From positions 1-37,169 of the forward strand of contig SMSO01000031.1 in NCBI GenBank assembly GCA_004764695.1: DNA of 37,169 bases. The letters run 5' to 3'. A model generated the notes under the pieces. That model saw only the letters and a list, made by a program, of their open reading frames with translations, had not been told where the DNA came from and did not search any database. The translations under genes and the position numbers were made by a program. Shown in pieces: positions 1 through 20,552 of the stretch (within the stretch, counting starts at the first letter, position 1; each line of letters opens with the position of its first letter). Source of the DNA: Schizochytrium sp. TIO01. Lineage: Eukaryota; Protista; Bigyra: Labyrinthulomycetes.

Positions 1-116
1 CATGAAAAACAATGTGTTATTTATTTAGTTGCTTTTTTCAATTAATTTAATTTAATTTAATTAAAAAAAATTAAGGGAACAAAACGCAAAAAAAAAAAAA
101 AAAAAAAAAAACAATC

Positions 117-225
117 GGCGCGAAGGGGGAATCGAACCCCCGACCTCCTCCAACTCCTATGAGGTTACAGATGTTACTCTGCTTGGTCCACCCGAAGAGG
201 AATCATGCCACTAGACCATTCGCGC
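117..225 (-). tRNA. tRNA-Pro(CGG) with ~38-nt intron after position 37, copy 1
   Basis: Reverse complement: GCGCGAA TGGTCTAGTGGCATGATT CCTC TT CGG G [intron] T GGAGG AGGTC GGGGG TTCGATT CCCCC TTCGCGC C. Acceptor stem, D-arm and T-arm are typical of tRNA-Pro. The 5' anticodon stem is one C short of copy 2 (read error or defect). A long T run (A run at 88-111 on +) follows as a Pol III terminator. Confidence 0.88.
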
Positions 226-308
226 ATTGAATGGGTGGAACGAGAATTTGCTACGTCCCATCTTGAACAGAGTATTAAGAAGAAAAAAAATGTGAAAAAA
301 AGTTAATC

Positions 309-420
309 GGCGCGAAGGGGGAATCGAACCCCCGACCTCCTCCAATTCCTATGAGGTTACAGGTATTTACTCTGCTTGGTCCACCCGAAGGAGGAATCAT
401 TGCCACTAGACCATTCGCGC
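309..420 (-). tRNA. tRNA-Pro(CGG) with intron, copy 2 (tandem duplicate, 192 bp offset)
   Basis: Same cloverleaf with a full CCTCC/GGAGG anticodon stem, CGG anticodon and GGTTCGATTCC B-box. Intron nearly identical to copy 1. T-run terminator at ~295-301. Confidence 0.92.
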
Positions 421-637
421 ATTGAATGAACTGGCAGGTGAAGATGACTTGTAATATATATACTTATAAAAAAAGAATATAAGCAGCGGTGGAATTTTAA
501 TATCCGATGAAAAGAGAAGAGAGACAGAGGCACAGAGGCTTTAAAAATTTTCAAAAGGACCTTGTGAAAGCAATTGCAAAAGACTAGGTCCGAAGATCAT
601 ATTCGCACATCAGTCGGACAAGTTTGTACTGGATACG

Positions 638-1072
638 ATGGCGAGCACGATGGTGGCACTCTACAGAAGTGGCTTCACAGCAGTACGCGGCCAGCGCCTC
701 AACGCGCCTCTGCAAGGCCTGCTAGCAAAATCTGGAAGACGTGCTTTCTCTGGCGATGTAGTGGAGCAAGTCCAGCGTGAACTTGAGGCCAACCAAGGCG
801 TACTCGTGTACGGTAAGAGCTGGTGTTCTTTCTCCATGGGAGCGAAGCATATTTTAGAGTCTAAAGGTATTGATTACACTGCTCATGAGCTCGACCTTGA
901 ACCTCAGGGAGATAAGATTCAGGCCGCACTCTTCAAGATTACTGGGCAACGAACTGTCCCTAACATTTTCATCGGCGACGCGCACGTTGGCGGCTACTCA
1001 GACCTTGTTGCAGGCATGCAAGATGGTCATGTAAAAGAGTTGCTCGAAGCAGTCAATATTGAAATGAAGTAA
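638..1072 (+). CDS. Glutaredoxin, class I-like monothiol (CSFS), with probable N-terminal organellar (mitochondrial) presequence
   Basis: Motifs YGKSWCSFS, QRTVPNIFI (cis-Pro TVP) and HVGGYSDL. The first ~36 aa are Arg/Ser/Ala-rich, lack acidic residues and end RRAFS. Confidence 0.92.
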   Translation: MASTMVALYRSGFTAVRGQRLNAPLQGLLAKSGRRAFSGDVVEQVQRELEANQGVLVYGKSWCSFSMGAKHILESKGIDYTAHELDLEPQGDKIQAALFKITGQRTVPNIFIGDAHVGGYSDLVAGMQDGHVKELLEAVNIEMK

Positions 1073-2634
1073 CTATAATATGTGCTGGTTTCAAAGCCAT
1101 AAGGCCACCTCCACTATACCTGAGGTGCAGATTGTATTTTGGAGCCCTGTATTGTGACTTTATCTTCGTCATGTGATTAAGTTGTTCATAATACGAGAAA
1201 AAACAGTCTAACATCAGTGATACCGAATAACTCATCATTCTCAAATCTCTTTTGGGTCATTTTTAGAGTCGAGCTATCCTTTGTTGCTATCCTTTGTTAG
1301 ACGCCCCATTAGGCCTTTTTGAATCTTCTAGGATTATTTTCTGTTTTTTTATTCTCAATCTTTGAAACCTCTCTTCATGTAATAGTGAGTAGTATGACTA
1401 CTGAGCTTGATACCTTGTTCTTAGCTTTTATGCAAATAAAAATATAGGATAATCAACAATTAACAATTCATGGTTTTCACCGATCAGACATTCCTGGGAG
1501 ACAGCATGACAAGATGACCATCCAGCATCTGAGTTTCATTATTCTCGACCTCAGCACCAGAAATACTGCGAAATAACCACCTAGTGTCACAGTATATATT
1601 CCCTCGTACTAGATATATTAGACAATCCCTAACCTTGATAGTGATTCGGAGCTGGCAATTTTTAAACTTTCAGTAGTGAAGATCCCGGCCTGGACGAGAG
1701 CACTAGACACAATCGCAATCTATAGAGGATGAATTTTTCTTTCCTGATAGCATGTATATAACTTATTGACCGAGGAAGCCGTTCCAATATTTTCCACTCG
1801 TCATTTCTACACCTATCAATTCAATAAACCTTCCGAACACCATTTCGGTTGGCTGGCCTAGGAGTTTCACTGGTCTTCTGGCTGACCATTTGCTCTGTTC
1901 CAATTTTACGGTTCACAGTGCTTAAATATCATTCAAAGGGACTTCACATTTTTGTTGTTCTTACTTGATGCGTCATAGGTGTTGCCTCTCTGCAATTGAG
2001 TTGCCCCTCATGGAACTGTCCTTGAGGCCAGGCTTATGCATCGCATCCCTTCCTTGCTGAGAGTTTTTAACATTTCACTAAGAACCATGTTCTTTGCCTC
2101 GTGGTAGGCCTTATAATTATATTTTTTTTCAAACAAACAAAATGCAAAACAAGTATTATGATTGCCACCGTGATGTAATCACTAGTTGGAACCACACAAG
2201 CAAACTATGTCTCAACTTCCTCAATGTAGGTATAGTTTTCTTTTCGCTAATCACATCAGTCTCAACCAAACCAATTTGGATCAAAACAGCTAGAAACTAC
2301 ATGTGTGCGTAAAAATCAATGGAATCCAACCAGAAATGTTTCAGAAACAAGGATGCAAGAATTCCATTCCCTTGACAAAATTAGGATGCAGGAAAGATTC
2401 CTGCGTGTCCTTGCACCTGAAAATACACTTTGTAATGAAATATATTGCTCACGATCATTCAACCAAATCAACAGTTTTGTTTTGCAAGTTTATGCAAGAG
2501 TTTGTTTGTCTCAAAAAGCACAATGAGAATAAAGGAGAAATGAACCTTGAAAGAGTAAAATGAGGTTCAACTGTTTTCAACTGACGAACGGAGTTGATAC
2601 TATCTAAATCTACTTTTTGTAATGATCAAACCAC

Positions 2635-2935
2635 ACCAGAAAGCAAGCTTGAGATCAAATTTAATAGACAGATGCGTTCTGGAAAAAAGAAAGAAAAAGA
2701 AAAAAGAGGAACTGCTTGAACAGATGTTCCGTGAGTCTTGATGTATTCATGTTGTAAGCGACGCACTTTCTCTGCCGTTTTAAGAGAAAAATATGCTTCC
2801 CTTACTTGCAGCAGTTGGAAACTGAGTCTGAATCAAGTATATATTACTGAACAAAATAGAAAGCTCGATAGATTGGAAGCTGCAAGTATTGCCTTTATAA
2901 GATCATTGGAACTGTTGGGGCCTTATTATTTTGAA
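2635..2935 (+). pseudogene. Decayed paralogue of the terminal exon of the LRR genes at 15145-15466 / 23489-23810
   Basis: cttgaacagatgttccgtgagtcttgatgtattcatgttgtaagcg aligns with cttgaacaggtagctcgtgagcttcgttgcatccatgccgtgaacg. Peptide EQNRKLDRLEAASIAFIRSLELLGPY matches EQKLEVSRLEAANSVLTASLGLLGTY. Contains an in-frame TGA. Confidence 0.7.
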
Positions 2936-3772
2936 TCGAATATCCTTTTCTTTGCCCTGTTGTCCTTATGCAAAAGTACATTATTCTTTTATTTTGAAGA
3001 TTTCAATCATAATGTACTAGGGAATATTCATCATCCAAACATAGAGCGTGTTGGCATTTTTCATTGAGAAGCATATATAATGATAGCTGAAAATCGGAGG
3101 AGTGAATATGCAAGAGTCATAGACCATCCTTCGTAAGACGTTAGAGTACAATGCATAATCATTAACCAGATAAGCGATAGAATTGATGGCTTTCAAGATG
3201 CAAAGCAAGAGGGTGCCTCAATTCCTCAGATACCACATAGACATCATACTAATGACCATAACTAATCTTACATTAACTGAAGTGGTGACGATGACCTTGG
3301 AGTTCCTTTTCACAAGACTAGATGCTGAAAGGTGATACTGATTAGCGTGAAGTTGACTGTAAAGATGAAGGTAGAAGGCTTGATGAAGGCTATACGAAGG
3401 TTGATTTAAGAGTTAGCGATCTGCTGTCCTGAGGAATGAATACCAGGACAGATGGATTCATGTAGTAATTAGGAAGATTAAGACATTCTTGAATATGGTT
3501 AGAGATAATCGATGAGGTTGGATTATCCAACCTTCTTCACCATCGATCCAAGTTAAACCAAGCTTGGGTGTCGGTGATGTGTATTCACACTTCTAGATCT
3601 TGACTTCAGCAGCCACGTCAGTCTGGCTGCTTATTCTTGTTCTAATGTAAACCTTATTCCTAATGGGTTTTACAAAGGGACACCAAGAACTCTAGCAATG
3701 TCTTGTTCATTTGTTCCTTCGATTGGAGATCTCAGCAATCACAAACTACACAAAATTTGAATTCGCCGAGGA

Positions 3773-4010
3773 AAGTTTCTTAGCTGTAACATTTCTTAGT
3801 CCCCTCAAGCCAAAGCTTGCTGAGAAGCATGCTACATGACTTTTCTAGATCTCTTAAGGCCAACTTGCATAAATTGTTTCTTCTCTTAGAGCCAAACCTT
3901 ATTCAGGAGCTTTTTTACATAACCTTTCTAGACCTCTCAGGGCCAATCTGCCCAACGTTTTTCTTATCTTAGGGCCAAACCTTGCTCAGGTGCTTTTGCA
4001 TAGCATCTGC
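3773..4010. repeat. Degenerate tandem repeat, ~83-bp period, ~2.7 copies
   Basis: tttctagatctcttaaggccaa (3842) recurs as tttctagacctctcagggccaa (3925). tcttagagccaaacctt recurs as tcttagggccaaacctt. Confidence 0.55.
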
Positions 4011-4260
4011 CTTATTACTGAAGGCCTGTCATCTGACAGACCCTGAGAAAGTGGCTCAAAACCCTACTTCCACATGCGTGTCAACCGACAGGCCCTAAGA
4101 GAGCGACCTTGTAAGACTAAAATTAGGTCTTTCTTGTGATTTAAGTTCTCCAATGTCAGCTGACAGGCCTTAGAAGAGTAATTTCTCCTCACAAAATTGA
4201 ACTTGTACTTACGGCTTACCCACCGTCAGACCGAACTTCTGGCCAATTATTAATTAAGCC

Positions 4261-4452
4261 TATTGCAGATTAGCTTAGCGCGCAGAGGTAGTTTAACAAT
4301 GATGATATATATGTTATTGAAATTTCGGATCTTTTTGGATACAGGCAAGATGAATGTATCATGTTGAATCCAGTAGAGTGTTGGACAGAAGATTTAGGTT
4401 AAGTTAAGTTAAGTTAGGTTAGTTTAGCACCTAGCTGTATGTTACGTCAATA
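4261..4452 (-). mobile_element. Solo LTR related to the copia element at 15493-20900, with 5-bp TSD AAGCC
   Basis: Begins tattgcaga and ends tagctgtatgttacgtcaata like the intact LTRs. Contains degenerate TTAGG/TTAAG repeats. Flanked by aagcc at 4256-4260 and 4453-4457. Confidence 0.88.
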
Positions 4453-4991
4453 AAGCCTAAGCAGGGGCTAGCAGTGGGTATGAAGATCAGTTGACACTCA
4501 GTGCAAATGAGGTGTTGTTATTTGCATTATTTGCGTGGTCGAATGTACTTTGGAAAGGATATATGATGCCTTTATAAATATTAGTTTGATTGTGAGATAC
4601 TAGTTAGTTCTATGACTAGGTAGTCCTATGAGATGGTGCTAGTGGAACCTCTGGAGCAAACATTACTGGAAAAGATCTTCTACCGAACAAGTGATAATAG
4701 GACTTGCAAGGAAGGACGCCAGCATGGCTTGTTAGGTAGAGTTAGGATCAAGTTAGTAAAATACCTTTTTATTTCAAGAGCACTAAGTAACATCTGTATC
4801 TTAAGGAAAACCATAGCAACTCATTGAGCCAGCACGTGTGCACGCCACCTTGCAACCCTGTCATGGCCTTGCAGCTTCACATCCAGCAGGTTCGAAACCT
4901 TCTGCGACGACTGGGACTGTGCCACGAGCTTCGCTGAGAGCGTACACGCACGCGCCCGCTGGTTGAAGTCTAGATCTTTCCTTACTGCACG

Positions 4992-7900
4992 ATGTCAGAC
5001 CACCCAGATGTTGTCGATGCCCTTGAGCAGCTTCGGAATGGCGCTACAACATTGGAGTAAGTTAACATGGTAGTCTCGTTCGCTCGGTCGCTCGCTTGCT
5101 TGCTTGCTTGCTTTATTTGCACGGTGTTGCTTTTGTTGTTATTGTTTTGCAAGTTTATGCGATGGCTGGTTTGTTTGTTTGTTTGTTTGATGGATAGGCG
5201 GATGGATGAATGGATAAGTTGTCTGTTTGAGTGAGTATACATCCATCGAACAAAGAGCAAAATGACAACACAACAAAGATAAATGCTGAAAGCCAACCTA
5301 GATCACTCACGTCCATGCATGCATGCGTGCATCTATTGTAATATGTAACGTGTAATGTATTGCTTGCCATCATTCAATCAAATCGACAGTCTTGAAGGCA
5401 ACAAAATCGGCTCAGAGGGCGCCAAGGCAGTGGCTGCGGCGCTGAAAGAGAACCGGTCGCTGACATCACTATCGTAAGTTGTCTACGCGACACCGCAGCT
5501 CGTGGACTTGTTTGTACATGATGTTTGGTTTGTTGTTTGGTGGGTGAGTCGGTGTTGTTTTGCATCTTTATGCAATCGCTTGTTTGTTTGATGGATGTAT
5601 AAGTGGCCTGTTTGACTTGAGTATGCATCCATCGAACAAAGAGCAAAATGACAACACAACATAGACGAAATCCTGAAAGTCAACCTAGATCACTCACGTC
5701 TATGCATGCATGCGTGCATCTGTTGTAACATGTAACGTGTAATGTATTGCTTGCCATCATTCAATCAAATCGACAGTCTTAGAGGCAACCAGATCGGCTC
5801 ACAGGGCGCCAACGCAGTGGCTGCGGCGCTGAAAGAGAACCGGTCGCTGACATCACTTGAGTAAGTTGTCTACGCAAGACCGCAGCTCGTGGACTTGTTT
5901 GTACATGATGCTTGGTTTGTTGTTTGGTGGGTGGGTCGGTGTTGTTTTGCAAGTTTATGCAATCGCTTGTTTGTTTGATGGATGGATGAGTTGTATGTTT
6001 GAGTGAGTATACATCCATCCAACAAAGAGCAAAATGACAACACAACAAAGATAAATGCTGAAAGCCAACCTAGATCACTCACGTCCATGCATGCATGCGT
6101 GCATCTATTGTAATATGTAATATGTAACGTGTAATGTATTGCTTGCCATCATTCAATCAAATCGACAGTCTTTCGGGCAACAATATAGGCAATGAGGGCG
6201 GCAAGGCAGTGGCTGCGGCGCTGAAAGAGAACCGGTCGCTGACATCACTTGAGTAAGTTGTCTACGCAACACCGCAGCTCGTGGACTTGTTTGGACATGA
6301 TGCTTGGTTTGTTGTTTGGTGGGTGGGTCGTTGTTGTTTTGCAAGTTTATGCAATCGCTTGTTTGTTTGATGGATGGATGAGTTGTCTGTTTGAGTGAGT
6401 ATACATCCATCCAACAAAGAGCAAAATGACAACACAACAAAGATAAATGCTGAAAGCCAACCTAGATCACTCACGTCCATGCATCTAATGTAATGTGTCA
6501 TGTGTAATGTATTGCTTGCCATCATTCAATCAAATCGACAGTCTTTCAGTAAACGGAATCGGCTTAGAGGGCGGCAACGCAGTGGCTGCGGCGCTGAAAG
6601 AGAACCGGTCGCTGACATCACTTGAGTAAGTTGTCTACGCAACACCGCAGCTCGTGGACTTGTTTGTACATGATGCTTGGTTTGTTGTTTGGTGGGTGGG
6701 TCGGTGTTGTTTTGCAAGTTTATGCAATCGCTTGTTTGTTTGATGGATGGATGAGTTGTCTGTTTGAGTGAGTATACATCCATCAAACAAAGAGCAAAAT
6801 GACAACACAACAAAGATAAATGCTGAAAGCCAACCTAGATCACTCACGTCCATGCATGCATGCGTGCATCTATTGTAATATGTAATATGTAACGTGTAAT
6901 GTATTGCTTGCCATCATTCAATCAAATCGACAGTCTTCGATACAACGATATCGGCGACGAGGGCGCCAAGGCAGTGATAGCGGCGCTGAAAGAGAACCGG
7001 TCGCTGACATCACTCAAGTAAGTTGTCTACGCAACACCGCCGCTCGTGGACTTGTTTGTACATGATGCTTGGTTTGTTGTTTGGTGGGTGGGTCGGTGTT
7101 GTTTTGCAAGTTTATGCAATCGCTTGTTTGTTTGTTCGTTAGGTTGGTTGGTTGTTCGATGGATGGATGGATGAGTTGTCTGTTTGAGTGAGTACACATC
7201 CATCAAACAAAGAGCAAAATGACAACACAATAAAGATAAATGCTGAAAGCCAACCTAGATCACTCACGTCCATGCATGCATGCGTGCATCTATTGTAATA
7301 TGTAACGTGTAATGTATTGCTTGTCATCATTCAATCAAATCGACAGTCTTAGAAACAACCGCATCGGCTCAGAGGGCGCCAAGGCAGTGGCTGCGGCGCT
7401 GAAAGAGAACCAGTCGCTGACATCACTTGAGTAAGTTGTCTACGCAACACCGCAGCTCGTGGACTTGTTTGGACATGATGCTTGGTTTGTTGTTTGGTGG
7501 GTGGGTCGGTGTTGTTTTGCAAGTTTATGCAATCGCTTGTTTGTTTGATGGATGGATGAGTTGTCTGTTTGAGTGAGTATACATCCATCAAACAAAGAGC
7601 AAAATGACAACACAACAAAGATAAATGCTGAAAGCCAACCTAGATCACTCACGTCCATGCATGCATGCGTGCATCTATTGTAATATGTAACGTGTAATGT
7701 ATTGCTTGCCATCATTCAATCAAAACGACAGTCTTTATAACAACGATATCGGCTCAGAGGGCGCCAAGGCAGTGGTCGCGGCGCTGAAAGAGAACCGGTC
7801 GCTGACATCACTTGAGTAAGTTGTCTACGCAACACCGCAGCTCGTGGACTTGTTTGGACATGATGCTTGGTTTGTTGTTTGGTGAGTGGGTCGGTGTTGT

Positions 7901-10900
7901 TTTGCAAGTTTATGCAATCGCTTGTTTGTTTGATGGATGGATGAGTTGTCTGTTTGAGTGAGTATACATCCATCGAACAAAGAGCAAAATGACAACACAA
8001 CAAAGATAAATGCTGAAAGCCAACCTAGATCACTCACGTCCATGCATCTAATGTAATGTGTCATGTGTAATGTATTGCTTGCCATCATTCAATCAAATCG
8101 ACAGTCTTGGATACAACAGTATCGGCTCAGAGGGTGCTAAGGCAGTGGCTGCGGCGCTGAAAGAGAACCGGTCGCTAACATCACTATCGTAAGTTGTCTA
8201 CGCAACACCGCAGCTCGTGGACTTGTTTGTACATGATGCTTGGTTTGTTGTTTGGTGGGTGGGTCGTTGTTGTTTTGCAAGTTTATGCAATCGCTTGTAT
8301 GTTTGATGGATGGATAAGTTGTCTGTTTGAGTGAGTATACATCCATCCAACAAAGAGCAAAATGACAACACAACAAAGATAAATGCTGAAAGCCAACCTA
8401 GATCACTCACGTCCATGCATGCATGCGTGCATCTATTGTAATATGTAACGTGTAATGTATTGCTTGCCATCATTCAATCAAATCGACAGTCTTCGATACA
8501 ACGATATCGGCGACGAGGGCGCCAAGGCAGTGGTCGCGGCGCTGAAAGAGAACCGGTCGCTGACATCACTTGAGTAAGTTGTCTACGCAACACCGCAGCT
8601 CGTGGACTTGTTTGTACATGATGCTTGGTTTGTTGTTTGGTGGGTGGGTCGGTAATGTTTTGCAAGTTTATGCAATCGCTTGTTTGTTTGATGGATGGAT
8701 GAGTTGTCTGTTTGAGTGAGTATACATCCATCAAACAAAGAGCAAAATGACAACACAACAAAGATAAATGCTGAAAGCCAACCTAGATCACTCACGTCCA
8801 TGCATGCATGCGTGCATCTATTGTAATATGTAACGTGTAATGTATTGCTTGCCATCATTCAATCAAATCGACAGTCTTCGATTCAACTATATCAGCTCAG
8901 AGGGCGCCAAGGCAGTGGCTGCGGCGCTGAAAGAGAACCAGTCGCTGACATCACTTGAGTAAGTTGTCTACGCAACACCGCAGCTCGTGGACTTGTTTGT
9001 ACATGATGCTTGGTTTGTTGTTTGGTGGGTGGGTCGGTGTTGTTTTGCAAGTTTATGCAATCGCTTGTTTGTTTGATGGATGGATGAGTTGTCTGTTTGA
9101 GTGAGTATACATCCATCCAACAAAGAGCAAAATGACAACACAACAAAGATAAATGCTGAAAGCCAACCTAGATCACTCACGTCCATGCATGCATGCGTGC
9201 ATCTATTGTAATATGTAATATGTAACGTGTAATGTATTGCTTGCCATCATTCAATCAAATCGACAGTCTTGAAGGCAACAAAATCGGCTCAGAGGGCGCC
9301 AAGGCAGTGGCTGCGGCGCTAAAAGAGAACCGGTTGCTGACATCACTATAGTAAGTTGTCTACGCAACACCGCAGCTCGTGGACTTGTTTGGACATGATG
9401 CTTGGTTTGTTGTTTGGTGGGTGGGTCGGTAATGTTTTGCAAGTTTATGCAATCGCTTGTTTGTTTGATGGATGGATGAGTTGTCTGTTTGAGTGAGTAT
9501 ACATCCATCAAACAAAGAGCAAAATGACAACACAACAAAGATAAATGCTGAAAGCCAACCTAGATCACTCACGTCCATGCATCTAATGTAATGTGTCATG
9601 TGTAATGTATTGCTTGCCATCATTTAATCAAATCGACAGTCTTAAATACAACGATATCGGCGACGAGGGCGCCAACGCAGTGGCTGCGGCGCTGAAAGAG
9701 AACCGGTCGCTGACATCACTTGAGTAAGTTGTCTACGCAACACCGCAGCTCGTGGACTTGTTTGTACATGATGCTTGGTTTGTTGTTTGGTGGGTGGGTC
9801 GGTGTTGTTTTGCAAGTTTATGCAATCGCTTGTTTGTTTGATGGATGGATGAGTTGTCTGTTTGAGTGAGTATACATCCATCCAACAAAGAGCAAAATGA
9901 CAACACAACAAAGATAAATGCTGAAAGCCAACCTAGATCACTCACGTCCATGCATGCATGCGTGCATCTATTGTAATATGTAACGTGTAATGTATTGCTT
10001 GCCATCATTCAATCAAATCGACAGTCTTTCAGTGAACGGAATCGGCTCAGAGGGCGCCAAGGCAGTGGCTGCGGCGCTGGATGAAAATCATGTTCTTCAG
10101 GAAATATAGTGAGTTTGTCCAAATTAAAGAGATTTAATCGAATGCTTGAGTTATAAGAAATGAAGCTTTGAGATGGTTTAAACTAACAAATTAGGGTTGT
10201 ATACCTTGGCAGTTTTGATTATTCTGATATCTCTCAAGACGTGATAGATCATATTGGTGACCGCTTAAAGCTAGCTAAAGATATAGTTGACGAATTCACA
10301 AAGTCTGCATTGAATGGTTTTTCAAAAGATGAAAAAGTGCGATGGGGCCGGGCGAAACTGATGGTAGTTGGGAAGGGGGGCGCTGGCAAGACATCAACTA
10401 TTCGCACGTTACTCGGTCAAGCATTCGTAGCGGAGCATGACTCGACCATTGGTGTAGAACTCAAGGTGATTCGCACGAAGGACTGGAAAGAAGACCCCAT
10501 GGGCATTCATTCTGCTGACCTCCATGAGGCTCTCGCAAAACATCAATTATTTCAAGGGCAAGACAATCTCGCTGCAAGATCTTCGCAGGCTCTTCTCTCG
10601 AACGATGTTCCTGTAAAGAAGCGCCGGGTTTCAGAGTCAAGCATTTCTGCACTTCGATCAGATGATATTCCTAAGCTAAAGATTGATTCTAAGGAAGTGA
10701 TAAGATCTTACAGGGCAGATGTGAAGGTTCAACTGGAAGAGAGAGGTCACAAAATTGTTGAAACTGATATCAGTTTTTCTATTTGGGATTACGGTGGGCA
10801 GGAGGTTTTCTACGCTTTGCATCACCTTTTCCTAACTAATTACGGGGTGTATGTGGTCGTTTTCGATATGCGAGAAGTGATTGGAAAAGATAATTTCCAG

Positions 10901-12790
10901 GACTGTTCTGACTATGCGTTAATGGAGGACAGCGAGACGGCACTAAACACGATTCGATTCTGGCTAGACTCGATACGCTTACATGCGAATGGAGCCAAGG
11001 TTATTCTTGTGGGAACATATCTCGACGCCCTGCAGGATACTAAGGAAGATCTAAATCTCGTTGACACTGAGTTGGAAGTGCTTCTAGCTCAGGCCAACGG
11101 CCTCCATCATGTGAGAAACAAAACAGAGAATCTGAATTTTTACCCTCTGGACAACACCGAACGAAGGGAGCCATTTCGTTGTGAGCTTCTTCGTGAGATT
11201 CTCATGACTACAGCTGCCAAGGAAGAATATGTAAAAGAGAAGGTACCACTGCGGTGGTCTCTCTGTTTCGATCGTATGTTCAGAACTAATAAAGACTACA
11301 TGGAGCTCGATGCTGTGTATGAGCTTGCAAAGGGATCCTGTGGCATTTCAAAAGATGACGCTACAAAGATGCTAGAGTTCATGCACGAGCTGGGGGTAAT
11401 TGTGCATCTCACCTCTACGCCTGCTTTAGCAAACTATGTGATCCTGCAACCTCAATGGCTGCTGGGCAACTTGTCACGAGTAATTTGTGATCCAATGCAT
11501 ATGAAGGCGCATGTGAAAAAAATGAAAGAAGCAGTTACAGAGGTTGAGATACCAACAGATTGGTATGCTGACTTAGAGACTTGGAAGAAACGCGGGGTTG
11601 CAAGTCAATTATTTCTGTCAATGTTATGGGGTCGACCTTTTTTAGTGAAGTACTTTTCTGAACTCATGACAGAAATGCTTCTGGCTAGCAGAAGCCCATG
11701 GATAGGAGACTTGGACGCAGAGGGAGCTTTGTTAATTCCCAGTTTACTAGAGAATATCTCTGAGGATGGGCTCGATGATTTCTTTTCGGAATTTGAAGGC
11801 GCCGCTTTAGTGTATATCGAGTTTGACTTTTTCCCCAAAGGAGTATTTCAACGCTTCGTTGCGAGTATGGTGTCAAATTTCCCTGCAGGGCTCGTTGAGG
11901 TTCAGCAGGTGTACGCAAATGCGGCAAGCATCATATTTGATGGCACTTCTGTCCTCCTGGTTCGGGATGATACTCGACGTCGTATTATCATGTATTTAGA
12001 AAATGATGAAGAAGACGAAAGCAGCGATTTACAGAGACCAATAACAGACATTGTACAACTACTGCACACTCAACTGCAATCAATAGATGAAGCTTTCATG
12101 AAACAGAAATTGAATCCAAGGTTGTTTTTGAGCTGTGACGGTACGACAAATGATGAAAGTTGTGCCTCTATTAGTGTTCTGGCAAAGCGACAGCGCGGTA
12201 AGGTCTTGTCTGTTGGGCTCAAGAAGAAAAAATTGAGGCTGTCATCCTTTCGGTTGTTTTTTGCCAACAGAGATGAGGCCGAAGGGTTGGAATCGAAGGT
12301 AACAGCACGACGAGAGAAGAAGTATGACGTCTTTTTGTCACACGCTTGGGGCGAAGATAAGAAAGTGCATAGGCTTGTATGCCGTGTAAGTGATGAGTTG
12401 CAGAACAATCATGGTATATCATGTTGGCTCGATCGGAACGAGGTGCAGCACGGCGAGATTACTCGTATAATGACTCAGGGTATCGATGATTCCAAAGTGG
12501 GCGTTGTCTTTGTTACACGGGAATACATGGAGAAGGTGAACTCTGACCCTGCGAGGGAAGATTACTGTCGTTATGAGTTTGAGTACCTGGTAAAGAGAAA
12601 GTCCCGAGTTCGCATGATTCCAGTTGTACTTGAGCAAGCTATGACTGGTACAAGCAAGTGGGAAGGCGTTTTTGGCGGTTCGTGGGGAATTAATCCTCTT
12701 TATGTTAACATGACGAGTGGTGGATCTCCAAGTGAGGTTAAGGAGCTCCACGATATGGTTCGTCACGTTCTTAGTGAAATTGAAAAATAA
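4992..12790 (+). CDS. ROCO-family LRR-Roc-COR-TIR protein, 15 exons, predicted 1244 aa
   Basis: Manual GT-AG model, all introns phase 2. Exon 1: 4992-5056 (MSDHPDVVDALEQLRNGATTL). LRR exons: 5390-5473, 5777-5860, 6169-6252, 6542-6625, 6934-7017, 7347-7430, 7732-7815, 8105-8188, 8490-8573, 8875-8958, 9267-9350, 9640-9723, 10025-10108. Last exon: 10213-12790. Total 3735 nt with no stops. Roc motifs GKGGAGKTS, STIG, WDYGGQEVFY, LVGTYLD. COR motif LEFMHELGVIVH..ILQPQWL. TIR motifs YDVFLSH..ISCWLD..SKVGVVFVTREY..YCRYE. Confidence 0.92.
5057..10108 (+). repeat. Tandem array of 13 intron+exon units (373-413 bp), each with one 84-nt, 28-aa ribonuclease-inhibitor-type LRR exon
   Basis: Acceptor caaatcgacag|T CTT and donor |gtaagttgtctacgc recur in the units. 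Consensus xLxxNxIGxEGAKAVAAALKENRSLTSL. Spacings: 387, 392, 373, 392, 413, 385, 373, 385, 385, 392, 373, 385. Confidence 0.97.
12320..12790 (+). other. C-terminal TIR (TIR_2-like) domain of the ROCO protein
   Basis: KYDVFLSHAW, GISCWLD, IDDSKVGVVFVTREYM, YCRYEF with Glu codon at 12575-12577, MIPVVLE. Confidence 0.88.
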
Positions 12791-13530
12791 CGATTATCCT
12801 AAGTTTGAGCAATTGATGTTTCATATATGTTAGTGTTTGCTCTTGCACAACATTGTTTCTCATTCGAAACATTCTACTGCTATTGTGTGAGGCTTTGCTC
12901 CAATTGAACACGGGGTTTGTTTTCTTTTTAAAATTTTATCAAGTAACTTCATTCGATTTTTGTTTTTATTCTTATAATAGGTCTAATTGTCATTTTGAGA
13001 GCAACGATACCCTTTTTAGTGGTAAATCTACTACGAGAAACAGTGTAAATACTTTATATCTTAACCTATAGTACTATGCCGAGCTAGTGAAAACTAGGCC
13101 AATGGATGTTGGCACTACAAACCTGAACCCATTTATCAACTCACACATATACCAGGGCCACTCCTTTCTTATTTCGTGTCTACGTCTCTATACTCATATT
13201 ATCCACGCTTCTCTTCATCAGACCCACTGATGAAGGCTAAATTTCAACTATGTCGTGTATATTATCAAACTCGATTTTCAAAATGTAATTGAACTGAAAG
13301 ACCTGCCAACCCTTTTGACTGTTTGACCAAGGAAGAGAGAGACAGTGCTGAAGGCGATTCGTCACGAGACACTTGTATATGATTACGGTGTGGTCTTGTC
13401 GGGTTATACCTCGAAGTGATGCGCAATTCAAAGGAAGGTTTTATGTTCAATAGGACAAAGTTGAGGAGTGGCTTGCTTCAGGTTAAAGGTCTAGCCTTTG
13501 TAAGTAACTATTGAGTATTCATGTGTCTGT

Positions 13531-15491
13531 AAAATGGTGAACATGTGGGGCACAAGGAGAGGTTTTGCCTTGATCTTTTTAAAATTAAAAACGCATGGTG
13601 AGAAATGTTTGAGCAAGGTGGCTGATGTTCAAACTGGAGTGAAATCACTTTTAATTTTTCATTGTCAATTGTGGACCAGCAGGCTGGGGAACAACAATAT
13701 TGACAACAAAGGTTGCGCAGCGTTGGCGGATGCACTCAAGACAAACCATACGTTGACCATGCTAGAGTGAGTTGACTGTTATACCCTTTGCATGCATGCA
13801 ACAAGAGGGTTAATCATATGATATACTGACAGGAAGCATTGGAATGATTACGATTCTGAGAACAAGTTGTTGTCTTTGGCCGAGTACGGATGCGCAGCCT
13901 TACATCTAACAAAATCAACGACGAAGGATGGGTGGGCTTGGCGGAAGTACTGAAGGAGAACAAGACGGTGGAAACGTTGCTGTGAGTTAGACTAGCAATT
14001 TATCAGGCTATTGCCGGTACGAGAAGTTACCCATTGTAGCTTCTTTTGCAGAGAGATAACTGACTTTGGTATGAATTGACGCATTTTTCTTTTTCAACAG
14101 GATGAATGGAAGCATTGTTGGCGATAAAGGTTGTGCGACGTTTGCTGAGGTACTCCAGAAAAACCATTCGCTGAAAAACCTAGGGTGAGTTGAGCAATCT
14201 ATGTGTCAGACCATTCTGAGAATACACGGGCCTTTGTTCAAATTCTTGGCTGTTTCGAGTGAATATTGAAAGTTTAGAAGCATAGAGTTGCACTTAGAGT
14301 GGCTCCGTACTGATTGTGCAGGAAGACTATTTGTTAAGATAACTGACTTTGATGTATAAATGGAAACAAATGAAATGATTTGCTATTTCGTTTTTGACTA
14401 ATAGTCTGGGTACAAAGTACTTTGATATCACAGGCTTTCGCGCTTTTATGGATGTACTCAAGGAAAACCAGGTTTTGAAAGCGCTATTGTGAGTTGAATG
14501 ATTTTGTTTTTTGGGGGGGGTCTCTGACTGATGCAGAAATGATCAGAGGATCGAAAGAAGTTGTGTAATTACGTGTTTAATTCAAGCAAGTAGAAGGGAG
14601 CGATGCTTGCTTTTTGAAACCATGAGGAAGCCATTCGTGACGCTGTCAGAGGACTAACATTGGGTTGGAACGGGTTATGCCACGCAACAACGTTTTCATT
14701 TTATTGCTAACTGCAATCTAACAGCTTGAGCGCAATGAGCATTGACGACAAGTTTGGTGTGGCTTTGGGTGAGGTGTTGAAGAAGAACAAGGTTCTGACA
14801 GCATTATCGTGAGTTAAACAAGTTATTTTTGGGCACAAAAGTGGTAAGGGTCAAAATCATTGGTGTACACTACTGCGGTTGATAAATATGGAACACTCGG
14901 AAGATATAAGAGAAAATATGGCAATGTCCTTGAAAATTGCAGTTCGATAGCAGAGATCTAACTCTATTCATTATTTGTAAATCGTGTTATAGTATCAATG
15001 GGAAGGACAGGAGCAGCACAAAAGGTCGTGTGGCGGTGATTGAAGGACTTCAGGCGAACCGCAGTATCACAATCTTTGAGTACGTTGAAGAAAAACATGA
15101 AGAATGGGAATTGTTGGCTAACACAATGATTTGTTGATTGATAGACACCCCTGGCGAGGTGATAAAAGCATCCAAAGTGAGCTTGACCTGAATAATCAGA
15201 TTTATGCTGAACAGGAAAGGAAGAAAAATCTTGAACAGGTAGCTCGTGAGCTTCGTTGCATCCATGCCGTGAACGGGACCCTAGCTATGCCGCTTGCAGG
15301 GAAACGTGGCAAACAAATTGTGCAGAGTAGTTTAACTAGCAACACGACCAATGTAGGAGGTAAACAGCAATGCTTTGATGAACAGAAGCTGGAAGTTAGT
15401 CGTTTAGAAGCTGCAAACAGTGTCCTAACGGCTTCATTGGGATTGCTGGGCACGTATCTTTGCTAACCAGATAAATCATTTTCCAATCTAG
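13531..15491 (+). repeat. Segmental duplication copy 1 (~1.96 kb), paired with 21865-23835
   Basis: Colinear, highly similar sequence from aaaatggtgaacatgtggggcac to cattttccaatctag. The ORF translations are near-identical in both copies. Confidence 0.95.
13683..15466 (+). pseudogene. Multi-exon RI-type LRR gene, copy A (5' end not identifiable; partial gene or pseudogene)
   Basis: Phase-2 exons: 13683-13766 (LGNNNIDNKGCAALADALKTNHTLTML), 13898-13981, 14101-14184, 14405-14488, 14725-14808 (all 84 nt), 14993-15079 (87 nt), terminal 15145-15466. AG acceptors and GTGAGT/GTACGT donors. Introns are unique. Confidence 0.8.
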
Positions 15492-15492
15492 T

Positions 15493-15689
15493 TATTGCAG
15501 AGTAGCCTGAGCTGTGAAGCGTGGAGAGGTAGTCTGACAAGGATGACGAACTCAGGAGAAAGAGAAAGAGGATGATATATGAGTTATCGGGGTTTCAGGT
15601 CTGCATACAGGCAGGTTAATGTGTGGATAGGAGAGCTTGGTTAGGTTAGGTTAGGTTAGGTTAGACAGTAGCTGTATATTACTTCAATA
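15493..15689 (-). repeat. 3' LTR (197 bp), termini TATTG..CAATA
   Basis: Direct repeat of 20709-20900. Contains (TTAGG)4 TTAG on +. Confidence 0.95.
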
Positions 15690-15701: not shown

Positions 15702-18700
15702 TCACGCGTCAGCACCTGAAGCATCAAGTAAGCGACTAGCGTGTTTCCAATGAGATGGTGCTGCAAGTGGTTTGGTAAGTAAATCAGCTATATTTTCTGT
15801 GCCTTTAACATGATGTACCTTGAGTAATTGGTTTTGTCTTCGATGAATCAGTACTGCTAGTTGTACTGCGAGATAACCATTTGTACCATTAACTTCTTCC
15901 TTTTTGATTGTGTTTACTAATGCTTGACAATCTATATATACCTGTATTTCATTGATGTAAATGTTCATGTCTGCTAAAAGTTGTCGAATGGATTCTGCTC
16001 TGAGAACTCCTGCAACTGCAGCAATTAGTTCAGCTTCGTGAGTATTTCTTGCAACTGTAGACTGTTTGGTTGTTTTCCATACAACAGCACTATCATTTAT
16101 CATAACAACATATCCTGTAACACTACGACGAAGTTTGTCATGTGCCTTGCTGAAAGAAGCATCTGTATAGACGTTCAAAACAAGTTGTGCCTCTGAATCC
16201 ACGCCTTTGAGTGTTAGAACTTTGTCCTTTGTGGCCTTGACATAACGGAATGCATGTTTAAGAGCTTGCATATGTTCCGCTCCATTCTTTTGACCATGAC
16301 ATGCAAGTTGGTGTAAAGTGTATGCCATATCCGGTCGAGTTTTTAGTAAATACATTAGAGTGCCGACAAGTGGACGATAGTGTTCATTCACAGAGTCGTC
16401 AGGATGATCACTTAACTCTTTAAGGATGGATGGAGTTTTAGCTCCATTGCAGTTTTCCATATTACATCGCCTAAGGGCTTTTTCACAATACTCGCGTTGG
16501 CTGATGGTACAGACCTTTCGTGACTTGTCATAGACATGTGTATCACTAAGATAATGGCATTGTTTTTCACGATTAACTTTGACGCCGACATTTTGTTCGA
16601 GTTCTTTGACAATCGCTTTGAGTGCTTGGGGCGTGCCAAAAATTCTCATGTCATCAACATGGATAGTCATTAGAAGATCTTTGCCAATAAAGAGTGATGC
16701 GTCCGTTATAGATCGTGTTAAGCCATAATTTTCTAATATAGCCGTCAAATGATCCATCCACCTACGGGGGGCACTTTTGAGTCCATATAGACTTTTACGC
16801 AGACGATAACAATAACCTTCTGCTAAGTCAAGACCTTCAATACCTTTGATGTAGAGGAATTCGTCATCTGGAATTTGTGCTTCTAGAAAAGCGGCTGTTA
16901 CATCAACGGTGATAGCATCATAGCCTCTCGTTAAAGCAATAATTGTTGCAACACGAATGCTTTCAACATTAACTGTTGGTGAGTATATATCATAAACATG
17001 TTCAATGGCCTCATTGTAGCCTTGTACTACAACCCGTGCTTTTAACAGATTGACCGGTGGTGCCTTCTTTGTAAAGACCCATCTAGTTCCCATTACAGTC
17101 TGTCCCTGTGGTAAAGTGTGTAAGGGTACAGTTTCCAGAACACCAGCGGACTGCAGATTGTGATGTTCAGTATTCATAGCAGCGATCCATAGTTGCTGAT
17201 ATGCCTGAGGCAGTTTCCGCATTTCTTTATAAGTGTTTGGAACTACAATGTCGTCATATGGACATGGTTTTGGGACCGGTTTAGGTAATTGTTTATTATC
17301 TGTGTTGGTTTTAATAAGAAAAGCAAAATATTCCTGTTCCCTCGGATATATCGTGGGAATGATTAGTTCATGTAAGTTCTCTTCTTTTGATAGAGAATTA
17401 ATATCCGAGAAATCTAACTCTGTATTCGTCATATTACGTTTTCGTTTCAGACGATTGGTATAGTATCGGTATTTATTTGCAGCGCCTTTGGCACTGGGAC
17501 CAACATTTAGTGGTACATGAGGTTTGGGAGTCCTTTTGGATCTCCGATGACTATCGCGTGCATGGACTGAACTATGTTCTAGTTCCATGTCTTCACGAGC
17601 ATGTTCACTTTTGGATTCACGGTCATCATTATTTACCTCAGAATGACTAACGTGTTCACTATTGGATTCACGGTCATTGTGATTTAGTTCCGGATGACTA
17701 GCGTGTTCACTACTGGATTCACGGTCATTGTGATTTAGTTCCGGATGACTAGCGTGTTCACTACTGGATTCACGGTCATTATGATTTGGTTCCGGATGAC
17801 TAGCGTGTTCACTACTGGATTCACGGTCATTATGATTTGGTTCCGGATGACTAGCGTGTTCACTACTGGATTCACGGTCATTATGATTTGGTTCCGGATG
17901 ACTAGCGTGTTCACTACTGGATTCACGGTCATTATGATTGGGTTCCGGATGACTAGCGTGTTCACTACTGGATTCACGGTCATTATTATATTCTGGGGTA
18001 TTAGGAGTGAGGAAAGATTTAGTATTATTAGCTGTGGAGGATAAAGCAGGTAGATCCTGATACATTTCTCCATCAATTAGTTTATTTGATTCTTCACGTG
18101 TCCAATGAGTAATTAGATCAGGTGTCAGAGCGGTTTCTATTGACATTGCACGCTGACGAGTTTGTTCAGTCAATGCTTGATCGAAAATCTTGACTTCACG
18201 CGTTTGAAGGATGTTGGACTTGTCTTTAGGTAAGACATGTACAGTTCCATGAGTGTAACTATCAGCATATCCAAGGAAAATGCCTAGTTCACCCCTATCT
18301 CCCAACTTTTGCGGAATGGGAAACTTCTTGAACACACATGGTGCTCCAAAAATGTGGAAGTAGCTGTAGTCTGGTGCTTTGCCAAAATGTCGTTCGTACG
18401 GAGATTTCCGATTGCGACTGGAGGCTGTGCGATTCTTGACATGTACAGCATGAGATAAAGCATAGGGCCAATATTTGGCTCCGAGTAATGCAGTTTTTAG
18501 ATTGGAGCGAAGACCATTCATTAGTACTCGATTGATGCCTTCAGCAGGATTTGTAGCATGAGAGTGTGGTGCAGATAGTTTATGTTCCCACCGCATGGTG
18601 TGAAGTGATCTTGCAAACTCTCCGCCTGTAAAATATTTAGCTCCGTCTGTGCGAATGATGATGCGCGAGGTGTTTTTACCTTGGAGCCATGCTTGAGCAA

Positions 18701-19060
18701 AGGTACGAAGGGTCGTGGACACTTGATCAGTGGATTGTATAGGATAAACATATGTAAAGTCTGAGTAAAGATCTCTGTAGACTATGGCATATTTGAACTT
18801 GTTGGGGATGCCTAGAACGTGGAATGGTCCCATCACATCAGCTGTAACAGCTTGTCGAGGAGACTTAGCATATGGTGTGTGAGGTCCTTTTGTCACTGGA
18901 ATACGTTCAAAGTTGGCAACTTTACAATCCATGCATAAGAAGTCGATTTGTGATGCAGGAACTCCTATGGAGGATGCTATGCGTGGAATGGAAGCGTGAC
19001 CTAATTTAAGATGAGCTTCTAGCCAATCTATTCCTTTATAACTGAGTTTTTTGTGCTTTC
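15702..19060 (-). CDS. pol: copia Pol: integrase, repeat linker, reverse transcriptase, RNase H
   Basis: HLKLGH..CMDC zinc motif. DDE triad ADVMGP / RTDGA / PAEGINR. RT motifs KARVVVQG, VDVTAAFL, KSLYGLKSAPRRW, IHVDD. RNase H motifs YTDASF, HEAE, YIDCQ, NIADLLTK. Joined to gag-PR across a frame change near 19040-19060. Confidence 0.95.
17597..17990 (-). repeat. 51-bp coding tandem repeat (DRESSSEHASHPEPNHN) x ~7.5 in the IN-RT linker
   Basis: ggattcacggtcat recurs every 51 bp (e.g. 17664, 17715). Confidence 0.95.
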
Positions 19061-20552
19061 CGTAGTTGCAGAGCGTTAACTTTGGGTGATTTAACAGGGA
19101 TAAGCATTGGGATGTCAGATTGCTGACCGAGTGTAATAACTTCTCCATGTGGAGTGGTCATACGATCGCTATCTTGTGAGAAGAAAAATGAGAATCCTTG
19201 CTGAGTCATAATAGACGTCGACAGTAATGTGTGAGCAAGGGAAGGTGCGTAGTAGACTGTAAGTGTTAAAGGAACAATTCTACCCGACGTTGATCTTACT
19301 CGTGCCTCCACGGTACCTTTTCCTAAAATCGGAACTGAGGATCCTTGAGCTGCATCCATTGATAGTGGATTAATGTTCTCATAGTTTGAAAGTAATGCAA
19401 GATTTGGTGTGACATGCAAATTGCATCCAGAATCTAGTAGGAATCCTTCTGAGGTTGTCTCTGCTGACTTCGGTTCTGATTTTAGATGATTGATTGTCAG
19501 AAGGTTGACACTGAAATTGGCATGAAAAGGTCCTTGATCAAAAGGAGCGTTGTGTAACGCGAGACCTTTGTACGGTGGTGTTGAATTATGACGCTGACGC
19601 TTGTTGTTCGACTTTTGTTGTCGCGATGATCTACGTGGACAAACAGAGGGTCTGTGTCCAACTTGGTTACAGATAGGACAAATTGCTGTCAAGAATTTGC
19701 AGTTTGCCTCAGCATGATTTGAATAACCACAGTGTGAGCATTTATTCCTTTGAGGAAAGGGTTGTTGTGCTCCCCCGGAATTGTTGTTTTGAGATGTAGG
19801 TCGTTTTTGACGCTTGAACTTGTTCCGGGAAGGGTGAAAGGAGTTTGCTTGTAGATGTGTGGGTTCAGGGTTCCCAGCAGAATAGACACTTTTGCCTTTA
19901 AGTGTGCATTGTTGTGCAACTTCCCGTTCCGTGTTTCGTAACTCTTGAAACAATTCTTTACTATACTCTTTGAGTTTAATTGCTTTGCCATAGATCGCAG
20001 TTGTTTGTGGACCCATGTAACGAATACGTGGTAAAAGGTTAAGGATAAACATGTAATCATGTAACATCATGCCAGTAGCTAGCACGTCTAACTGAGTGTT
20101 GTGCAGTTTCAGAAACCATGTCATGACTTCGTCTTCTGACATGTTCTCAAAAGAATTGTTAAGGTATTGCTGAAAACATTGTACGAGTGCTGAAACCTTG
20201 TTGATGTTGATTTCACCAGGCTGTTTCTTAAATGCGATTTGAAGTTGTGCCCAGGCAGCACGTCCTTCACCGCCACGGTGAGATTTACCATATTGTTGTA
20301 GTCGTTCGTCAAAATCTGTGCCAGCTTGATTGCTGAGTAAGGAAGGCGTAAAGTGCACTGTCAAGTAGACGTTGTCTCTTAGGGTCAGTGCAAGCTTCAA
20401 TCTACTGCTAGCTTTTCTTTAAGCTTTCGTAGTTCTTCACGTATGTCTTCATCAGAGTCGGGACTCTGTTTCTTGATGTTCGCCGCTTGGTCCGCAGCTT
20501 CTTGTTTCTTCTTGAGCTTATTGCTCTTCTTGCTGCCTCCAGGAGTCATCAT
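19036..20552 (-). CDS. gag: copia Gag-protease (apparent frameshift near 20415)
   Basis: Two CCHC knuckles (CSHCGYSNHAEANC, CPICNQVGHRPSVC) and protease motif FLLDSGCNLH. Likely ATG at 20552 (MMTPGGSKK..EELRKLKE) is out of frame with the 454-aa ORF at an A-run. Confidence 0.85.

Follow-up and report, generated by a model that had tools for sequence, protein, structure and literature searches.

A 5-kb "satellite" lying near a chromosome end in the thraustochytrid Schizochytrium sp. TIO01 turns out to be an array of exons and introns belonging to an intact gene that is transcribed and spliced and is predicted to encode a series of leucine-rich repeats (LRRs) followed by Roc, COR and TIR domains. 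The gene occupies positions 4992-12790 (+) of the stretch of 37,169 nucleotides (nt) analysed here (contig SMSO01000031.1, assembly GCA_004764695.1), which is referred to below as the window and which supplies all coordinates unless stated otherwise. Tandem Repeats Finder reports the array as a 385-bp period repeated 12.6 times (5205-10079, 90% matches), and each 385-bp unit carries one 84-nt exon, as established both by reading the sequence and by script. We consider the receptor-like reading of this gene to be well founded, on the basis of its exon structure, the splice junctions found in public sequencing runs, the domains of its product and a pattern of variation in which a handful of codons per repeat are hypervariable within an otherwise almost uniform array.

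Structure of the gene

The gene consists of 15 exons, all on the forward strand: a start exon, 13 LRR exons and a terminal exon. The start exon (4992-5056) is 65 nt long, begins with ATG, contains 21 codons plus 2 nt (MSDHP..NGATTL) and ends in phase 2 at a GTAAGT donor. It is followed within 5390-9723 by 12 standard LRR exons of 84 nt, starting at 5390, 5777, 6169, 6542, 6934, 7347, 7732, 8105, 8490, 8875, 9267 and 9640 and separated by introns of 289-329 nt each. The thirteenth LRR exon (10025-10108) has a divergent tail (..ALDENHVLQEI), kept in paralogues and in proteins of Hondaea, and uses the donor GTGAGT. A unique last intron of 104 nt (10109-10212, GT..AG) then separates it from the Roc exon, which is the terminal exon (10213-12790, 2578 nt), in frame from 10214 and comprising 858 codons and a TAA.

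All exons enter and leave in phase 2 and the LRR exons are exactly 84 nt long, with CGACAG directly 5' and GTAAGT directly 3' of each (GTGAGT at the thirteenth), giving AG/GT borders in 13 of 13 cases. When the exons are joined by script, the frame stays open for 1244 codons up to the TAA at 12788-12790; the joined exons were used for this frame and stop check only, profile searches being run exon by exon. Reading through any of the array donors leads immediately to a stop (GAG TAA), and the array therefore can not be one long exon. The 13 equal-length phase-2 exons running in frame onto a Roc-COR-TIR exon, as claimed in a preliminary description made from the sequence alone, were all located by script. 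The predicted product is a cytosolic protein of about 1244 residues, with a short N-terminal cap, 13 LRRs of the ribonuclease-inhibitor (RI) type, Roc, COR-A/COR-B and TIR, and no signal peptide is evident in it.

The exon register begins in the middle of a beta-strand, with the result that one variable residue is encoded by a split junction codon, made up of the last 2 nt of the upstream exon (nt 83-84) and an invariant T (nt 1 of the next exon). Among the array introns (5474-10024) certain length classes recur in a higher-order pattern, with 289 nt found before LRR4, LRR8 and LRR12 and 308 nt before LRR3, LRR5 and LRR11. An intron hairpin was considered and rejected: the array intron at 8574-8874 folds no better than shuffled sequences (z -0.40) and its overall stability is unexceptional, although a local GATGGATG/CATCCATC stem is present in it.

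Transcription and splicing

Positions 9640-12790 were compared with contigs assembled from public runs, of which three (X1, X5 and X4, with 27-35 Mb of contigs) are RNA-like and one (X24, 63 Mb) is DNA-like. The joint 10108->10213, which skips the 104-nt GT..AG intron, is present in X1, X5 and X4 contigs with 32 letters on its shorter side. X24 lacks this joint, and an X24 contig covering 10122-10256 crosses the boundary unspliced. One X1 contig of 630 nt shows 0 differences from the window, including a T at 10276, which is the variant of the window and not that of a nearly identical copy located elsewhere in the assembly (the C13 copy, described below). From 9720-9723 numerous further joints reach the constant part of a next LRR exon after a stretch of diverse hypervariable letters; they are restricted to the RNA-like runs and represent LRR-to-LRR exon junctions of the gene family. 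Coverage of the intron bins is 10-20 times below that of the exon bin in X1, X5 and X4, which is not so in X24. In X1 a paralogue junction, from an exon-1-like sequence to LRR1, was also seen as a loose end.

The preliminary description had proposed that 14 spliced junctions should be sought in transcripts; in the contigs of the RNA-like runs the last of these, from LRR to Roc, was recovered for this very copy, and the others at the level of the family only.

Domains and predicted activities of the product

In the terminal exon Pfam profiles identify Roc (6.2e-18, 65.6 bits against a cut-off of 27), COR-A (1.5e-11, 44.8 bits, cut-off 35.3), TIR_2 (7.9e-13, 49.4 bits, cut-off 28) and TIR (3.1e-6, 27.5 bits, cut-off 21.3). 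There is no Pfam match in this exon to NACHT or NB-ARC, only AAA_22 at 20.2 bits (cut-off 27) over the Roc P-loop, and the Pfam COR-B model finds no match in it at E<0.01. An AlphaFold model of the terminal exon, built with 31 homologues as input, reached a mean confidence score (pLDDT) of 80.5 and was matched by Foldseek to LRRK1, LRRK2 and the Roco protein of Chlorobium tepidum (8e05_A, 3dpu_A and 6hlu_A being the best). About 690 columns are aligned with LRRK1, LRRK2 and the RocCOR structure 3dpu_A (for the last, E 6e-17, template-modelling (TM) score 0.66 on the target), and against the COR structure 3dpt_B the TM score is 0.72; given an alignment of about 690 columns, the COR-B-like half is therefore present too. 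Profile and model together thus provide the Roc and COR-A/COR-B features that mark ROCO proteins.

The Roc GTPase domain lies at 10349-11110 (terminal-exon residues ~46-299), with a low-confidence insert at residues 118-151. Among the 31 homologues its motifs GKGGAGKT (P-loop), DYGGQ and GTYLD either do not vary or are at least 90% conserved, and with G1, G3 and G4 intact the protein is a predicted GTPase. COR-A (Pfam, residues 348-433) and the COR-B-like region (to about residue 690, Foldseek) together cover 11171-12283, and the TIR domain covers 12320-12787 (residues 703-858).

The putative catalytic glutamate of the TIR domain is E788 (codon 12575-12577), at least 90% conserved among homologues. 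In a PDB profile search, which also found TcpB and Cat1 chains, E788 (YCRYEF) aligns, at weak E values of 6e-4 to 1.4e-3, to the glutamate in the WTNYEL motif of AbTIR, an NAD+ hydrolase (8g83_A, 7uwg_A); we take this glutamate to be the catalytic residue of that enzyme. TIR domains from several protists are active NADases (bioRxiv 10.64898/2026.04.20.719644). When the TIR domain was searched against PDB as a single sequence, deoxycytidylate hydroxymethylase chains came out on top (E ~4e-4) and a TIR chain third; the former were taken as chance matches and rejected.

Single LRR exons match Pfam LRR_6 at 3.9e-5 to 0.046, and their consensus, L-x-x-N-x-I-G-x-E-G-A-K-A-V-A-A-A-L-K-E-N-R-S-L-T-S-L, is of the ribonuclease-inhibitor type. 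The order sensor (LRR), switch (Roc-COR) and effector (TIR) put forward in the preliminary description is accordingly backed by Pfam, Foldseek and PDB profile matches.

Hypervariable codons in a conserved framework

Within the array of the window, per-site diversity (pi) amounts to 0.028 in the introns and 0.056 at 69 framework exon sites, versus 0.506 at 15 hypervariable sites, which bears out the earlier impression of nearly invariant introns and framework interrupted by a few radically different codons. Hypervariability affects exon nt 5-10, 14-16 and 23-25 together with the junction codon, that is five codons per repeat, and in the motif LxLxxNxIGx it is found at the x positions only. The same codons stand out across the family, for which 102 non-identical units from 13 Roc-COR-TIR loci were compared: entropy at codons 2, 3, 5, 8 and the junction codon is 3.4, 3.1, 2.9, 1.9 and 2.5 bits, with 8-16 residues at each, all other codons having at most 1.4 bits, and 77 distinct four-residue combinations occur among the 102 units. 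In the LRR consensus LxxLxLxxNxL the x positions of the strand and of the ascending loop are solvent-exposed. The five variable codons are thus predicted to lie on the beta-strand/ascending-loop (concave) face, which would be the binding face.

The framework codons are under purifying selection, with a ratio of non-synonymous to synonymous differences per site (pN/pS) of 0.42-0.46, and the hypervariable codons are saturated (pN ~0.6, pN/pS 1.0-1.5). Stops occur in 0 of 115 anchored units, where about 20 would be expected if four codons per unit were random or saturated, and AG/GT borders are kept in 114 of these 115.

The last Leu codon of each LRR exon has a silent third position, exon nt 82 (e.g., window 5471 and 5858), which adjoins the split junction codon. 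The pi of this silent site, 0.53-0.64, is like that of the hypervariable codons, other fourfold sites having a pi of at most 0.26, and this hints at a mutational or recombinational component.

Paralogues and variation in repeat number

In the genome (64 Mb, 37 contigs) at least 16 full-length Roc-COR-TIR paralogues with 55-98% identity are present, many of them near contig ends, and the 385-bp unit occurs at least 386 times, often within 100 kb of a contig end. The same 65-nt exon 1 (MSDHP..ALEQL.NGAT.L) with its GTAAGTTA donor is kept at 11 paralogous loci. Where paralogues are 73-90% identical in their signalling modules, their LRR exons number 2, 3, 7, 10, 12-13 and ~16 or 17, and they have almost no hypervariable combinations in common; SGDD is the sole combination common to loci that are not duplicates of each other. 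The spread from 2 to 17 LRR exons among such close paralogues is direct evidence for in-frame gain and loss of repeats, and the modular, frame-neutral character that had been ascribed to the exons holds. Two minimal members, L015 (G000:C36:4977501-4987500) and L024 (G000:C24:4063601-4073600), consist of exon 1 and only 2 or 3 LRR exons ahead of a Roc-COR-TIR exon that is 90% or 73-74% identical to that of the window. The family seems to be absent from the public protein sets for this organism, because the best public match to the window protein is only 56% identical.

Proposed function

We think it probable that this intact, spliced LRR-Roc-COR-TIR gene encodes a sensor of variable ligands with a GTPase switch and a TIR NADase effector, and that its array evolves in the germline; by analogy it is a candidate single-cell counterpart of the intracellular immune sensors of plants and animals. 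The LRR face would bind a variable ligand originating from a virus, a bacterium or another non-self source. Binding would shift the nucleotide or dimer state of Roc-COR, which would hold the place that the NB-ARC/NACHT ATPase has in nucleotide-binding LRR receptors (NLRs), and this change would let the TIR domains associate and cleave NAD+, leading either to its depletion or to a signal of the cyclic ADP-ribose (cADPR) type. In the germline, unequal crossing-over and gene conversion would homogenise the introns and framework of the array, the binding-face codons would stay diverse, most simply through diversifying selection, and the symmetric phase-2 exons of 84 nt would allow repeats to be gained or lost in frame.

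Several points weigh against this proposal. The X1, X5 and X4 runs are RNA-like by guess only and the data are assembled contigs, not reads; besides, it is only the last junction that is tied to this copy, the other 13 having family-level support. Immune function, NADase activity and a special diversifying mechanism are all things that we infer. Positive selection at the hypervariable codons is suggested rather than demonstrated by a pN/pS that is ~1 across the family from saturation, and the silent variability of exon nt 82 goes beyond what selection on residues alone would produce. Finally, the recognition role could equally be one of allorecognition.

This last point leads to the alternative that survives best, and which we hold to be possible, though at a distinctly lower probability: the same protein would serve self/non-self or kin recognition (allorecognition, mating or control of fusion) or would bind some other non-pathogen ligand, with TIR-driven cell death as output, in the manner of the fungal HET/NLR-like incompatibility genes. 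A large hypervariable multigene family, often near contig ends, fits allorecognition loci too, and nothing found here links the gene to a pathogen. Against this stands the established knowledge that combinations of TIR, a switch NTPase and LRRs mostly serve anti-pathogen sensing. The persistent mirusviruses of this organism (PMC12606086) would also be an obvious selective agent. Neither of these two arguments is decisive.

Diversification of the array

A second question is how the binding-face codons have become decoupled from their surroundings. Introns that lie beside unrelated hypervariable segments are 98-100% identical; those before LRR11 and LRR13, for instance, show no difference over 280 nt, yet 6 of the first 25 bases are different in the exons that follow. 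Hypervariable similarity can not be predicted from intron identity (rho 0.19, not significant), and over all unit pairs the hypervariable distance stays at ~6.5 of 12 bases irrespective of how far the flanks have diverged. Pairs from the same array with 0-1 difference per 180 flanking nt are bimodal over the 12 bases, seven pairs having 0-2 differences and ten having 5-12. Gradual divergence after duplication was therefore rejected, the hypervariable distance being flat, without a rise with flank distance, and the pairs bimodal. Two options remain: either unequal crossing-over or gene conversion makes the flanks uniform, with diversity maintained at the binding-face codons, or a faster process of some kind rewrites these codons. 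Within the array, the most similar introns (~95% over 1.8 kb) belong to units i and i+8, yet the hypervariable codons of these units are unrelated.

A comparison bearing on these options is provided by the C13 copy, as positions 1-13515 of the window, the whole gene included, are a 99.7-100% copy of G000:C13:3998337-4011834. A BLAST alignment of the two gives 18 mismatches and 4 gaps in 9853 columns. All 13 cassettes recur in unchanged order in the C13 copy, which departs from the window at no more than two residues, both outside the hypervariable codons, and has 0 changes across 234 hypervariable-codon bases. Because these 234 bases are unchanged despite 18 mismatches over 9.85 kb, a hypervariable rate more than ~7 times the background is disfavoured over the time span of the pair, provided that the two copies are separate loci; the pair may reflect either a segmental duplication of recent date or the double assembly of a single locus. 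The shared segment ends exactly at the start of a 2-kb dispersed repeat, and in an A-run (window 12227) the C13 copy is 1 nt short, through a frameshift or a homopolymer error.

A shared pool of donor cassettes was likewise rejected. For LRR5 and LRR4, a genome-wide search placed the 25-nt hypervariable segment only in this array and in the C13 copy, with the exception of one match with 1 mismatch (C34:65414); being private in this way, the two segments argue against a store of identical donor cassettes.

These observations limit what can be said for a dedicated or unusually fast diversification at the binding-face codons (targeted mutation, or short-patch conversion with subtelomeric ectopic recombination) that would generate variants within clonal lineages, a rival explanation which we judge improbable. 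It could account for the pairs with nearly identical flanks that differ at 5 or more of the 12 hypervariable bases, for the nearly identical introns beside unrelated segments and for the hypervariable silent site adjoining the junction codon; however, the hypervariable codons of the C13 copy are unchanged, two segments are without an identical donor elsewhere in the genome, and no mutational signature was identified. A broader form of the idea, in which the array is a built-in diversification device, strikes us as doubtful. Frequent conversion within the array and between subtelomeres would keep introns and framework identical, so that recombination stays efficient, with only 15-18 binding-face bases per repeat spared or rewritten, and clonal populations would continually make new LRR-Roc-COR-TIR specificities, which would be the counterpart, on the side of the receptor, of the subtelomeric variation of var and VSG genes. 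The comparison of the window with the C13 copy does not point to a special diversifying mechanism, possible though such a mechanism is. Active or rapid swapping of cassettes draws no support from the 13 cassettes in conserved order, their unchanged hypervariable codons and the two private segments; of the reading in the preliminary description, the gene model, splicing, domain order, binding-face hypervariability and modularity are supported, the immune role and the NADase activity being putative.

Alternatives to a receptor

It is very unlikely, in our estimation, that the protein is a signalling ROCO in which the LRRs form a generic scaffold for protein interactions and the variable codons are merely unconstrained. 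LRRK2 and the Dictyostelium Rocos do act in non-immune signalling (established knowledge; reviewed in PMC4104024), but unconstrained sites can not pass the neutral level, and the hypervariable sites are 18 times more diverse than the introns of the same array; stops are moreover wholly avoided in the 115 units, and the family has expanded, reaching at least 16 genes that differ in repeat number. That the array is a non-coding spacer satellite with chance open frames (LORE-TEARS Group 0), or the gene a dead copy, can hardly be credited, even though 385-bp repeats have been published as spacers without similarity to GenBank sequences (10.1101/2023.06.15.545109) and the C13 copy has its 1-nt deletion, since 13 of 13 exons keep the frame and have canonical splice sites, the window copy is intact throughout, spliced contigs are present, the framework pN/pS is 0.46, no unit of the 115 contains a stop and single exons match LRR_6.

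Genomic surroundings

The array lies upstream of the 18S gene of a ribosomal DNA unit (18S-5.8S-28S, 25421-30941, +), no 5S gene being found in the window at the Rfam gathering score. Two further tandem arrays follow the 28S, one of 411 bp x 3.9 (31932-33563) and one of 371 bp x 6.5 (34716-37124) with 34% GC. From the layout of 25421-37124 a telomere would be expected on the right-hand side, yet the contig continues for 9.7 Mb.

Between the gene and the ribosomal DNA, a Ty1/copia-type retrotransposon (15702-20400, -) with RVT_2, rve, SH3_retrovirus and Pol_BBD domains is flanked by two copies of the ~2-kb dispersed repeat (13516-15495 and 21865-23835), of which at least 20 copies with 93-96% identity exist genome-wide, often near contig ends. 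The open reading frame of the copia polyprotein contains an in-frame tandem repeat of 51 bp x 7.6 (17598-17986). Upstream of the receptor gene and within the duplicated segment, a 144-residue open frame with a glutaredoxin domain (3.6e-16) is located at 638-1072 (+), and a ~378-bp element at 3323-3700, which may be a solo long terminal repeat or resemble a short interspersed element, has at least 40 dispersed copies with 90-99% identity on many contigs.

Significance

If this interpretation is true, the subtelomeric "spacer" repeats published for a model thraustochytrid would form the main part of a large family of receptor genes, and a unicellular heterotroph would possess an NLR-like sensor in which a GTPase switch is combined with a TIR enzyme, extending the picture of conserved immune modules (TIR, LRR) to the labyrinthulomycetes. 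The idea of exon-shuffled ROCO genes developed for brown algae would likewise reach a second, unicellular stramenopile lineage, here with an identifiable effector. The full decoupling of binding-face codons from flanks that are 97-100% identical makes the array a sharp case for the coexistence of concerted evolution and diversifying selection. The system would also look testable: Aurantiochytrium can be cultured and transformed, and it carries persistent mirusviruses (PMC12606086).

Comparison with known systems

The ~385-bp units resemble "Group 0" of the LORE-TEARS of Aurantiochytrium limacinum, described as a spacer repeat upstream of the subtelomeric 18S, without similarity to GenBank sequences and perhaps involved in the maintenance of chromosome ends (10.1101/2023.06.15.545109). 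Both are tandem units upstream of 18S at a chromosome end, and the 411-bp and 371-bp arrays after the 28S match the layout of Groups 1 and 2 of the same paper; the match to Group 0 is one of period, position and layout, the paper giving no sequence for direct identity. Unlike the published interpretation, the units of the window are exon-intron units of a protein-coding gene and not a non-coding spacer.

Lamprey VLR, trypanosome VSG and Plasmodium var genes are comparable in their LRR or surface-protein cassettes, subtelomeric location and conversion-like mosaics, whereas the array of the window is without evidence of somatic assembly, silent donor cassettes or switching. With the TIR-NB-LRR proteins of plants and the NLRs of animals the window protein shares the logic of LRR sensor, nucleotide switch and effector, a TIR domain with a glutamate of the catalytic type and membership of a large, variable and clustered family; animal NLRs also have RI-type LRRs. 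It would nevertheless resemble NLRs in the logic of its function without being a member, because its switch is a Roc-COR GTPase and not a STAND-type NB-ARC/NACHT ATPase, and its order is LRR-switch-TIR rather than TIR-switch-LRR.

Among ROCO proteins, LRRK1, LRRK2 and the Roco of Chlorobium tepidum have the same LRR-Roc-COR core, and the G4 motif is LRRK2-like (T-x-L-D). In comparison with LRRK1/LRRK2 the window protein is devoid of kinase, ankyrin, armadillo and WD40 domains, has TIR in the place of the kinase and contains an insert of ~90 residues in Roc. The TPR-ROCO-TIR protein of Chondrus crispus, mentioned in PMC11378527, places TIR after Roc-COR as in the window but carries TPR instead of LRR repeats. 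Proteins of Hondaea fermentalgiana annotated as LRR_6-Roc-COR-TIR are 44-46% identical to the window protein and share its whole architecture, including the ALxxNxxLQEL last repeat; they differ in having only 3-5, more diverged LRRs and have been automatically named LRRK or NOD2-like. We found no discussion of these proteins in the literature, nor a description of a thraustochytrid LRR-Roc-COR-TIR family in that on thraustochytrid ROCO proteins, Aurantiochytrium LRR/TIR proteins or LORE-TEARS, and SAR (stramenopile, alveolate and rhizarian) species such as Schizochytrium aggregatum were reported to have no more than four ROCOs (PMC11378527).

The nearest described system remains that of the brown-algal LRR-ROCO genes, in which one LRR is encoded per 72-nt phase-2 exon and for which exon shuffling, alternative splicing and positively selected concave-face sites have been reported (PMC3341825; PMC11378527). 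The parallel with Ectocarpus to which the preliminary description had pointed is sound: in Ectocarpus and Saccharina, as in the window, a stramenopile LRR-Roc-COR gene has one LRR per equal-length phase-2 exon, repeat number varies among paralogues, variable residues map to the predicted concave side, and the genes occur in clusters and as duplicates. The likeness is one of exon and domain architecture. The differences are that the exons of the window are 84 nt long and encode 28-residue RI-type repeats (LRR_6), in contrast with the 72-nt exons and 24-residue type I repeats of brown algae, that a C-terminal TIR domain is present where the brown-algal proteins are described as plain LRR-ROCO, that the introns are homogenised to 97-100% within the array, and that the host is a unicellular heterotroph. 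The family of the window is, in conclusion, a variant of the brown-algal LRR-ROCO exon-shuffling receptors, new in its RI-type repeats and its TIR effector.

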